A DNA stretch of 64,000 nucleotides from Oikopleura dioica. Lineage: Eukaryota; Animalia; Chordata. The DNA lies in NCBI GenBank assembly GCA_907165135.1, contig OU015567.1, forward strand, positions 13,144,001 through 13,208,000, written 5' to 3'. The number at the start of each line of letters is the position of its first letter. Position 1 is the first letter of the stretch. The notes under the pieces are model-generated. The model had not been told where the DNA came from. It did no database searches and saw only the letters and a program-made list of their open reading frames with translations. A program made the position numbers and the translations under genes. Below, piece after piece: positions 118-2,367 of this stretch.

Positions 118-798
118 ATAGAGCTCTTTTGCATCAATCATTAATTTCGGACCCAAATTTTCTGACAAATAAATTAAAATTTTTTCCGAGTTATTTTATT
201 CGAAATTATCTGAGACAAGAGTAGCTATCAGATGAACGCCGCTAATACAGTAGATGACTGTATGATAATGGTTGCCTGACCTTGAGACAGAGTGAGAGGG
301 TGCTCGGGCCAATAAGCGAGGGGCGAGGGTGGCTTTCCAATTCAGCGCTCTCCCGAGTCCGCCTCTTGTTTTCAACTCGAACTGCGCTGCTTTTCAGATT
401 CCGAGAACTGTTTCGCTACTGAAGCAAATTTGGCCGCAGAGATTTTTCTTCCGGAAGAATTTCCTTGCTCTACAAACTTGTGAAAAAACAGATGATTCTT
501 CGAACTTTTTATTCTTTATTTTTAATTAATTTCTGATTTTTTTACTAAAATATTTTAGAATTAAAATTGTCGTCTATAGCATATCAATTAATCCATGTAT
601 AAATAGAAAATTGATAAAATCTCAAAAATAGCAAGTTCAAGAGCCACTTCCGTCTCAAAACTGGGGCTAATCCCTGTATTTTTCAATTATCGAGATTTCT
701 CCAGTACGATCAAAGTCAATTTCAGACTGTGTGTATTGTTGCTGCGCAAGAAGCACTTACGAAAGAGGGTTGAGTTTTTTCCTGCACCGAGTAATTGT

Positions 799-1541
799 AT
801 GAACAAAAGCCAGTGCTGCGCCGCTGCTAATGAGTGCCAAGAAGAAACGTCGCAAAATAGCCGTCAATCCGGCCCTGGCCAAGGTCGGAGAGTGCGGCCC
901 GCAGTGTAAGAAAAGACAAATGGCCAACAAAATGATTATGGACAATGACAAACGACAAGTAAGTTCACCTCCTTTTTTCTAATGAAAACTTCAATCCCCA
1001 TTTCAGAGCTTCTCGAATCGGCTCCAAGCTCCAACCCTGGTCACTTTGGACGAACCAGGAGCACTTCTGCCCGAGCTAGGCGAGGAAACTGCGATCGATG
1101 TCAATGTCCATGGAGTTTGCCACGCACTACAATTTGGTATGACAAGTTCAACGAGCGAACCGATTTCTGACTGTCTTTTTTAGAATGCCTGCTTTTTGAA
1201 AAAGCAAAGGTGATCGTCGTGGAGGGCAATTCCGAGGCTACAGCTTCAAAACAGGCTTTCGTCGAACTTCTGAGGTAAGAAGAGGAATTCTATTATTGAT
1301 GGAAGTTGACCATACATATGTATAGTTTTTGCGAAGACGAGTTACAGTATCAAAGCTGCATGATGGCGATCCCCAAGAATCGATCGGACCTTCGAACGAC
1401 AGGTACACCTACTAGCATCATTAAAACAAAATTCTTATGGCCTATTTAGTTCGAAATTTGTGTCAATTTCTTGACTTCGAGCTCATCCCTCCCGCCGCCG
1501 GTTGGAGCGAGGATCACATCTATCTCGCCTTGGACTTCTGA
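799..1541 (+). CDS. OAZ: Ornithine decarboxylase antizyme (ORF1 799-909 overlapping +1 ORF2; 5 exons)
   Basis: GT-AG introns (959-1006, 1137-1183, about 1275-1325, about 1402-1449) join to ...ASKQAFVELLSFCEDELQYQSCMMAIPKNRSDLRTTVRNLCQFLDFELIPPAAGWSEDHIYLALDF*, matching the ODC_AZ pattern (SK..LL.F.E....; FL.FE..P). Stop at 1539-1541. Confidence 0.85.
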
Positions 1542-2367
1542 GCTTCTTGTTCAAATCTCCGAATCTTCTGCTCCTCAATGTTCATCTCTAAATGTTCAAA
1601 ATTAAACTTTAACAACACGAATAATGAAGATTACCATCATCTCATTACAAAATAGCCTCGTTTTCTCGTCGTTCCAATTCTCAATTTTTTTAATCCAGAT
1701 TCATAAATCAGCGTTTTCACGGCGATAAATTCAAGTTTTATTTAATAAGATAGGCATCAAGAAAACGAACCATCAAATGTCGCCTCAAGATCAAAGTTAA
1801 TTTTTCATTTTTCTTCAAATTTAATTTAAATTTCTAAAAGATTTTTAGAAATTCGACTATTCATTTTTACTAATAATAACTGATGTTTTATGGCTCATTT
1901 CAAGCGCGCTTATGTCTTTTACTCGGTTTTCAAATTTCAAATTGTTCATTTTTGTCAAGTTTATTCTCCAGTTTCTCAAGTTCTTAAGTTTTCTCATCTC
2001 CTTTCCGAATAATAAACTTTTGACCGTTCTTAATATTTATCATCTGCGTGTCTTACTTTTGAATATAAAAAGTGGATGATTGATTGACTGATATTCGGAA
2101 TCAATCAAATTTCCACGTAAGCTGTCGGAATAAGGGCGCGCTTTTGTCACTTGGAGTGTTTATCCCCAATTGTTGGGTACAGTCGTTTTTTGAAGAAAAA
2201 ATAAGTAACGCGCCACGGGCGAAATCTTCTTTTTTTGGCAACGGAAGAAACTTTTTCACTTTTTGCGATCTAAAAATAGAGTTGAAAAGAAAACGCGGAA
2301 GGGGCAGAAAATGAGAGCAAATTTTCAAAACGAATATCCGTTCAGAAATGAGAGAATTATTGAAAAG

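Follow-up and report, generated by a model that had tools for sequence, protein, structure and literature searches.

The antizyme gene and its mature mRNA

The window, a stretch of 64,000 nucleotides of the Oikopleura dioica genome (contig OU015567.1), contains a five-exon antizyme gene whose product belongs to the Pfam ODC_AZ protein family. The parts of this gene described here lie on the forward strand. The coding part of exon 1 (830-958) starts from AUG830 with the MSAKKKRRK... module, in the +1 frame relative to an upstream open reading frame, ORF1, and is followed by exons 2 (1007-1136), 3 (1184-1274), 4 (1326-1402) and 5 (1450-1541), the last of which has a TGA at its end. The ATG830 frame reads MSAKKKRRKIAVNPALAKVGECGPQCKK... 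(MSAKKKRRK...GECGPQC...) and is open to the GTAAGT donor at 959, where intron 1 begins (959-1006, GTAAGT...TTTCAG). Removal of four tiny GT-AG introns gives a product of 172 aa, which matches the annotated Oidioi.mRNA.OKI2018_I69.chr2.g7696 (P0001) residue for residue (100% identity, full length); the window thus belongs to chr2 of the Okinawa O. dioica assembly (OKI2018_I69). The spliced translation of exons 2 and 3 agrees with this protein, and the O. dioica annotation likewise places the protein start at ATG830.

The ODC_AZ core begins in exon 4, and Pfam and PDB matches were found for exons 4 and 5. The ODC_AZ family (PF02100) was matched by residues 99-159 with 26.1 bits, above the gathering cut-off of 24.2, which places the protein in the family, and PDB antizyme-1 chains matched it over the ODC-binding core at 1e-4. 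Because of these two kinds of match, the gene is the Oikopleura dioica antizyme. PF02100 was also found in most orthologues.

The likely last exon of the upstream gene, within positions 16-175, ends at 117 with a hydrophobic and then basic tail, and an AATAAA is located at about 170. Some 550 nt separate this AATAAA from the antizyme trans-splice acceptor, so the antizyme is probably not a downstream gene of an operon.

The acceptor, tttcag, lies at 719-724, and the mature mRNA starts at 725 with a 5' leader (725-798) that contains no AUG ahead of ORF1. A junction at 724/725 had been guessed in an earlier reading made from the sequence only, and it is supported by an RNA contig with a spliced-leader (SL) end as well as by orthologue junctions. 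The contig, X1, comes from a marine metatranscriptome and matches 730-943 with one difference; TAACAG+AC precedes the match, which is the 3' end of the SL joined at the AG|AC acceptor 724/725. The match starts at 730 and not at the junction because the (TG)n run at 727-732 differs by 3 nt, being shorter in X1 than in the assembly, which looks like a length polymorphism of the leader. In the orthologous mRNAs L001, L003 and L006 the SL is joined at the homologous ACTG... site, with 22-23 nt of SL letters present in L001 and L003; the full 40 nt are present in L015-L017.

RNA-seq reads from another O. dioica lineage (X9-11; three poly(A) runs) also cross the ORF1 region into the leader, but not into the SL. 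There were 37, 48 and 38 such reads (about 123 altogether), with an agreement of 0.98-0.99. Reads of this lineage are less than 90% alike and therefore align only at 795-931 (137 nt, at least 88% identity), the rest of the mRNA being too diverged. Low identity outside 795-931 indicates that lineages labelled O. dioica are far apart; between the assembled OKI sequence and L001, nucleotide identity is 89% over CDS nt 1-102 and 60% over nt 103-174.

Since the SL is joined at 725, the mature mRNA retains ORF1 and AUG799 is not removed by any trans-splice site. The sequence-only reading had named a 5' end or trans-splice site 3' of 799, which would remove ORF1, as the finding that would speak against it; this was checked, and such a site is absent. 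In one relative (L011, 863-989 of a genomic or unspliced contig) an extra upstream ORF was found whose UAG abuts the ORF1 AUG (AUU UAG AUG); it is removed by trans-splicing, according to the SL-joined form P0019.

A GTAAGA at 906-911, over the ORF1 stop, looks like a strong donor, and its use was rejected. With a joint from 905 to 1007, both ATG799 and ATG830 would be out of frame with the antizyme, and no contig or read contained it; X1 and about 50 reads per run continue through 906. The orthologous mRNAs all splice with a donor of the 958 type. A 103-aa orthologue model on a JGI genomic contig (P0007, L006 837-1148) was also discarded as a gene-caller artefact, in which translation runs through the leader in the ORF2 frame into intron 1; it does not translate from the stored locus.

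Two overlapping frames at the 5' end

ORF1 (799-909) consists of 36 codons followed by TAA and overlaps the start of the antizyme frame, here called ORF2. Its tail reads ...CGG CCC GCA GTG TAA with the stop at 907-909, and the frame is stop-free back beyond 725. The ATG at 799, the opening back to the acceptor, the CCC GCA GTG TAA end and the +1 position of ORF2 had all been described from the sequence, and all are present in it. AUG799 has a U at -3, a weak context by the general rule. It lies 31 nt upstream of AUG830, and ORF1 ends 77 nt after AUG830. With an upstream AUG (uAUG) in the mature mRNA, out of frame with the main AUG and opening a reading frame that ends past it, ORF1 has the form of an overlapping uORF.

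Word and profile searches recovered 12 full-length appendicularian orthologues with 39-100% identity, from transcript or metagenome contigs that represent only partly independent lineages. ORF1 is conserved among these relatives in start, frame, context and openness. Each complete leader contains one upstream AUG, 28, 31, 34 or 40 nt before the second AUG (AUG2, which is AUG830 in the window). This offset is always 1 modulo 3, so that ORF2 is always in the +1 frame in all relatives examined, and the indels in the spacer between the two AUGs are all multiples of 3. ORF1 followed by a partially overlapping main ORF in the +1 frame, the geometry of the canonical cassette, was found in all relatives. 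The arrangement is not due to chance, because ORF1, AUG830 and the +1 geometry recur in every relative examined.

The position -3 of the uAUG is a pyrimidine in 11 of 11 sequences, with a P of about 0.003 calculated from leader composition over eight lineages. The first codons of ORF1 encode MNKSQCC in O. dioica and MVKSQIC in L012, with MVKLT or MGKLS in others; the N-terminal pattern M-x-K-S/L-Q/T recurs, with CAG/CAA and TTG/CTG exchanges that leave the ORF1 amino acid unchanged. Beyond this N-terminus, the body of the peptide shows no conservation.

The ORF1 frame is open over 24-34 ORF2 codons in ten representatives, while in the remainder of the CDS the same frame has a stop each 9-36 codons. 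For each sequence alone this openness is not significant (P 0.05-0.49) and is informative only across lineages. A third-position U that would create an ORF1 stop was never found at ORF2 codons 3, 8 and 12/13, where C, A and G occur; at downstream sites of the same kind U is present at a frequency of 0.31. The P for this avoidance of U is 0.07-0.23 per lineage and about 1e-7 over some eight lineages if these are treated as independent, which they are only in part. Within O. dioica, synonymous variation is depressed in codons 1-13 (1/12 vs 43/86, P = 0.01), as predicted by dual coding. Judged from these comparisons, stops are avoided in the ORF1 frame for at least 24 codons and ORF1 is under selection.

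The other start, AUG830, is shared by the relatives as well. MSAKKKRRK stands at the beginning of 12 of 12 orthologues and is the longest invariant and most conserved block of the protein; the ATG at 830 that had been proposed as ORF2's own start is thus present in the sequence and invariant. The block itself (830-856; residues 1-9 in P0001-P0013) resembles a nuclear localisation signal of the classical basic type.

When the codons of six species were aligned, the amino acid was kept at 12 of the first 13, and 7 of these 12 varied synonymously in the ORF2 frame. The synonymous changes occupy third positions of ORF2 codons, each of which is the first position of an ORF1 codon, and they alter the ORF1 peptide, as in NECQEETSQNSRQS (window) versus NERKKETSKNSSKQ (L005). 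The pattern indicates that the ORF2 frame is selected at the amino-acid level already ahead of every possible ORF1 stop or shift site. Such selection would require initiation at AUG830, and evolutionary evidence therefore suggests that AUG830 is a real start, at which translation of the antizyme frame begins. In the canonical arrangement the main ORF lacks a separate start, and its product needs initiation at ORF1 plus a shift; this does not apply here, because AUG830 is invariant in the 12 orthologues and the ORF2 frame appears to be selected before the ORF1 stop.

A purine at -3 favours initiation as a general eukaryotic rule, which may not be Oikopleura's. The main AUG has a purine at this position in 7 of 7 non-dioica sequences and a C in O. 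dioica. In O. dioica both AUGs have a pyrimidine at -3, and leakiness therefore gives no clear preference for AUG830.

The recoding cassette and the end of ORF1

Antizyme is the textbook example of a cellular gene whose programmed +1 frameshift serves a feedback loop as sensor and effector at once. In canonical antizymes of the OAZ1 type the shift takes place at UCC-UGA (Ivanov & Atkins 2007, PMC1874602). The antizyme survey, which took in three ascidians and no appendicularian, recorded no site other than UCC for chordates, and the stop was UGA in 97% of cases; the sequence UGG-UGC-UCC-UGA is conserved from human to S. pombe (PMC1874602).

Positions 892-903 of the window, GUG CGG CCC GCA in the ORF1 frame, represent a decayed remnant of this cassette, as seen by comparison with relatives and with the published cassette (PMC1874602). 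The canonical antizyme mRNA L018 reads ...ACG CUG UGG UGC UCC UGA UGU, which translates in ORF1 as TLWCS-stop and in the +1 frame as RCGAPDV; ODC_AZ matches the product of L018 (P0042) with 56.7 bits. The +1-frame conceptual translations P0040 and P0038 contain GAPDV and GPDV, respectively. In non-dioica appendicularians, ORF2 encodes H-C-G-P-D/E-C (CAY UGU GGN CCN GAN UGY), and the same stretch in the ORF1 frame is YUG UGG NCC NGA (S/P-L-W-x-x). The appendicularian relic thus corresponds to CUG-UGG-UCC-UGA without the UGC codon, with 10 of 12 letters matching; the differences are two replaced U's, those of UCC and UGA, both at ORF2 third positions. The chance of a 10/12 match is 1e-3 to 1e-2 by a rough post hoc estimate. 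O. dioica lineages have drifted further, to AUG CGG UCC UAA in X9-11 and CGG CCC UAA in L001 and L006. Of module A (UGG-UGC) only a remnant is left, CUG-UGG in the relatives and GUG-CGG in the window.

Since CGAPD of L018 matches the appendicularian HCGPD in ORF2, and LW is matched in ORF1, we infer a one-to-one homology of the two frames with canonical ORF1 and ORF2, without fusion. A fusion in which the N-terminus of ORF2 would be the canonical ORF1, and CGPxC the canonical GPRWC, was considered and rejected on the same one-to-one correspondence. The sequence-only reading had likened GPQC to GPRWC, which is a comparison in the wrong frame; CGP(D/N/E/Q) is the old cassette read in the ORF2 frame. 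An exhaustive profile search gave 33 matches, with canonical antizymes at 1e-5 to 1e-3, and among them no intermediate lineage by which the gain of AUG2 could be dated.

The end of ORF1 differs among lineages. The terminal codon and stop in the window, GUG UAA at 904-909, had been proposed as a shift site and are followed by G; the site is indeed not UCC-UGA, as had been stated. At the homologous place L003 has CUG UAA A, and L001 has CCC UAA C six nt earlier without the second stop, while both stops are present in L006 (CCC UAA CUG UAA) and in the RNA-seq lineage X9-11 (UCC UAA CUG UAA). UGA is the stop in L004 and L007 (UUG UGA A), L005 (CUG UGA G) and L010 (CUG UGA C), and UAG in L011 (GUG UAG A), L002 (AAG UAG A, at +92) and L015 (GUG UAG G, at +101); L012 ends with AUU UAA G (+95). 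The stop position ranges from +71 to +101, with eight codon-plus-stop combinations at three or four positions. L001 and L003 are 92% identical, yet their ORF1 stop codons differ. Each of these differences is synonymous in ORF2, where it exchanges CCU and CCG for Pro or UGU and UGC for Cys.

A shift site conserved among related species was therefore not found, and GUG-UAA does not correspond to any entry in the table of known antizyme shift sites. The sequence-only reading had counted lack of conservation of ORF1 and its stop against itself; ORF1 proved to be conserved and the stop did not.

No stimulator of frameshifting was identified by the two approaches used. The 93 nt from the ORF1 stop showed no stable 3' fold in ten mRNAs (MFE z -0.5 to +1.1 vs shuffles), and the Rfam antizyme frameshift element was not found at E ≤ 1 in nine spliced orthologous mRNAs and window positions 500-1800, where two matches were at chance level only. 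A pseudoknot or an unlisted stimulator beyond MFE folds and Rfam may be present. The proposal of GUG-UAA as a novel programmed shift site lost ground on both counts, since even closely related O. dioica lineages differ in the ORF1 stop and its preceding codon, and the search for a stimulator gave none.

Candidate routes of antizyme synthesis

From these comparisons we consider it reasonably likely that leaky scanning yields the Oikopleura antizyme independently of frameshifting and that the ancestral ORF1 survives as an overlapping uORF; frameshifting would then not be obligatory for this antizyme. The sequence-only reading had offered two alternatives. The one with an own start under overlapping-uORF, leaky-scanning control is supported, because the AUG830 peptide is invariant and AUG799 is a conserved uAUG in a weak context; the other, GUG-UAA as a novel shift site, found no comparative support.

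Under leaky scanning, the capped mRNA carrying the SL would be scanned by 40S subunits, some of which would start at the weak AUG799, translate ORF1 and stop 77 nt inside the antizyme frame, producing no antizyme. Those leaking past AUG799 would start at AUG830 and give antizyme without a frameshift. In this way ORF1, as an inhibitory overlapping uORF, would control how much antizyme is made. In an appendicularian ancestor, the second frame may have gained an AUG some 24 codons before the shift site, which may then have decayed under selection on the new peptide; the ancestral UCC-UGA, just upstream of the present stop, would have been lost via changes silent in the antizyme frame. Leaky scanning, repression by ORF1 and any polyamine dependence are what we infer from the sequences.

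Several features fit this scheme less easily. Continued frameshifting would also predict that ORF1 stays open as far as the old shift region and that the exact +1 geometry is retained, a purely repressive overlapping uORF does not obviously need at least 24 open codons, and a constitutive start offers no evident route for polyamines to raise antizyme synthesis. We hold it rather unlikely, but worth weighing, that two routes coexist, with the AUG830 isoform accompanied by a polyamine-stimulated +1 shift of AUG799 ribosomes at the ORF1 stop (GUG-UAA in the lineage of the window); the second, shifted isoform would bear the ORF1 peptide, and the ancestral sensor would persist beside the new start. 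Coexistence would suit the canonical +1 geometry retained in all lineages, the selection that keeps ORF1 open to the old shift region with closure then within 0-10 codons, and the conservation of the ORF1 N-terminus at the amino-acid level, and polyamine feedback would have the correct sign. The UCC-UAA, CCC-UAA and AUU-UAA ends of some lineages carry known antizyme P-site shift codons, and UAA was nearly as effective as UGA in mammalian tests; GUG, CUG and UUG are absent from the tabulated antizyme P-site codons (PMC1874602). The stop position, stop identity and P-site codon flip between close lineages by ORF2-synonymous changes, which is difficult to reconcile with a working shift site, as are the lack of a 3' structure in MFE folds and of the Rfam element at E ≤ 1. 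Moreover, MSAKKKRRK...CGPxC, the block in which the protein is most conserved, would be missing from a shifted isoform.

Two further explanations appear very improbable. In one, the shift at a novel GUG-UAA would be obligatory and AUG830 unused, the conserved upstream sequence serving as an RNA-level stimulator. The ORF1/ORF2 geometry agrees with this possibility, and so does the stretch 795-931, in which the nucleotide sequences of O. dioica lineages are more alike than anywhere else in the mRNA (89% vs 60% further on); the variation before the stop does not, since it falls at ORF2 third positions, where it is synonymous in ORF2 and changes ORF1. Its shift site is not conserved either, and AUG830 is invariant and in a good context in most species. 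The other explanation, which we judge just as implausible, takes ORF1 as fortuitous or untranslated and without function, leaving the antizyme an ordinary single-ORF gene. An annotation pipeline did call a plain 172-aa ORF, and most of the ORF1 peptide beyond the N-terminus varies, but the uAUG keeps the same frame, a distance of 28-40 nt and a weak context in about eight lineages, the spacer indels come in multiples of 3, and the frame that the uAUG opens avoids stops.

As a tentative proposal, itself on the doubtful side, the polyamine sensor of antizyme may have been rewired in appendicularians, with the shift becoming dispensable after the gain of the second-frame AUG and ORF1 now being either an overlapping uORF that responds to polyamines or the way in to a residual shift at non-canonical NUG-stop sites. 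If this were true, one mRNA would offer two competing decoding routes whose balance sets the antizyme level.

According to reviews (including PMC2811004), practically every antizyme depends on the shift. In the literature searched, outside which most subscription journals lay, no paper was found that mentions both antizyme and Oikopleura, and no natural frameshift-free antizyme was found. A chordate clade with its own conserved main-frame start would represent a natural experiment in loss of dependence, showing that a recoding site can be bypassed without fusion of the frames, with the site decaying silently, ORF1 remaining under selection and the relic still visible. It also raises the question whether, and how, polyamines still control antizyme synthesis in Oikopleura.

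With canonical OAZ1-type genes the Oikopleura gene shares the ODC_AZ family, a short ORF1 (34-45 codons) followed by a +1 main ORF, and a CUG-UGG-(UGC)-UCC-UGA remnant at the homologous place. It differs in that its main ORF has an own conserved AUG and N-terminal peptide upstream of the old site, that UCC-UGA has been lost (CCC-GCA in the window) and ORF1 stops at a UAA that is not conserved, and that it has no intact 5' modules and neither a 3' pseudoknot nor the Rfam element was found. Bacterial prfB (RF2) genes without a frameshift (PMC12421855) are likewise a lineage-specific escape from an otherwise widespread autoregulatory +1 shift, again in a gene whose product belongs to the pathway that it senses; in prfB the frames were fused, whereas in Oikopleura both ORFs persist and overlap and a new second-frame start would bypass the shift.

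The overlapping or polyamine-responsive uORFs of SSAT, SpmSyn, AdoMetDC and AZIN1 (uCC) (PMC2811004) are conserved, have an inefficient start, overlap or precede the main ORF of a polyamine-pathway gene and follow a leaky-scanning logic, as putatively here. The Oikopleura uORF derives from a former coding ORF1. The same review describes no such uORF for antizyme, which it presents as a shift from a uORF into the main ORF (PMC2811004). Mammalian antizyme-1 ORF1 has two in-frame AUGs that give isoforms by leaky scanning, with the first AUG skipped by some ribosomes, as putatively in Oikopleura, and alternative N-termini as the outcome; both AUGs lie in ORF1 and their products need the shift, whereas the second AUG of Oikopleura is in the +1 frame.
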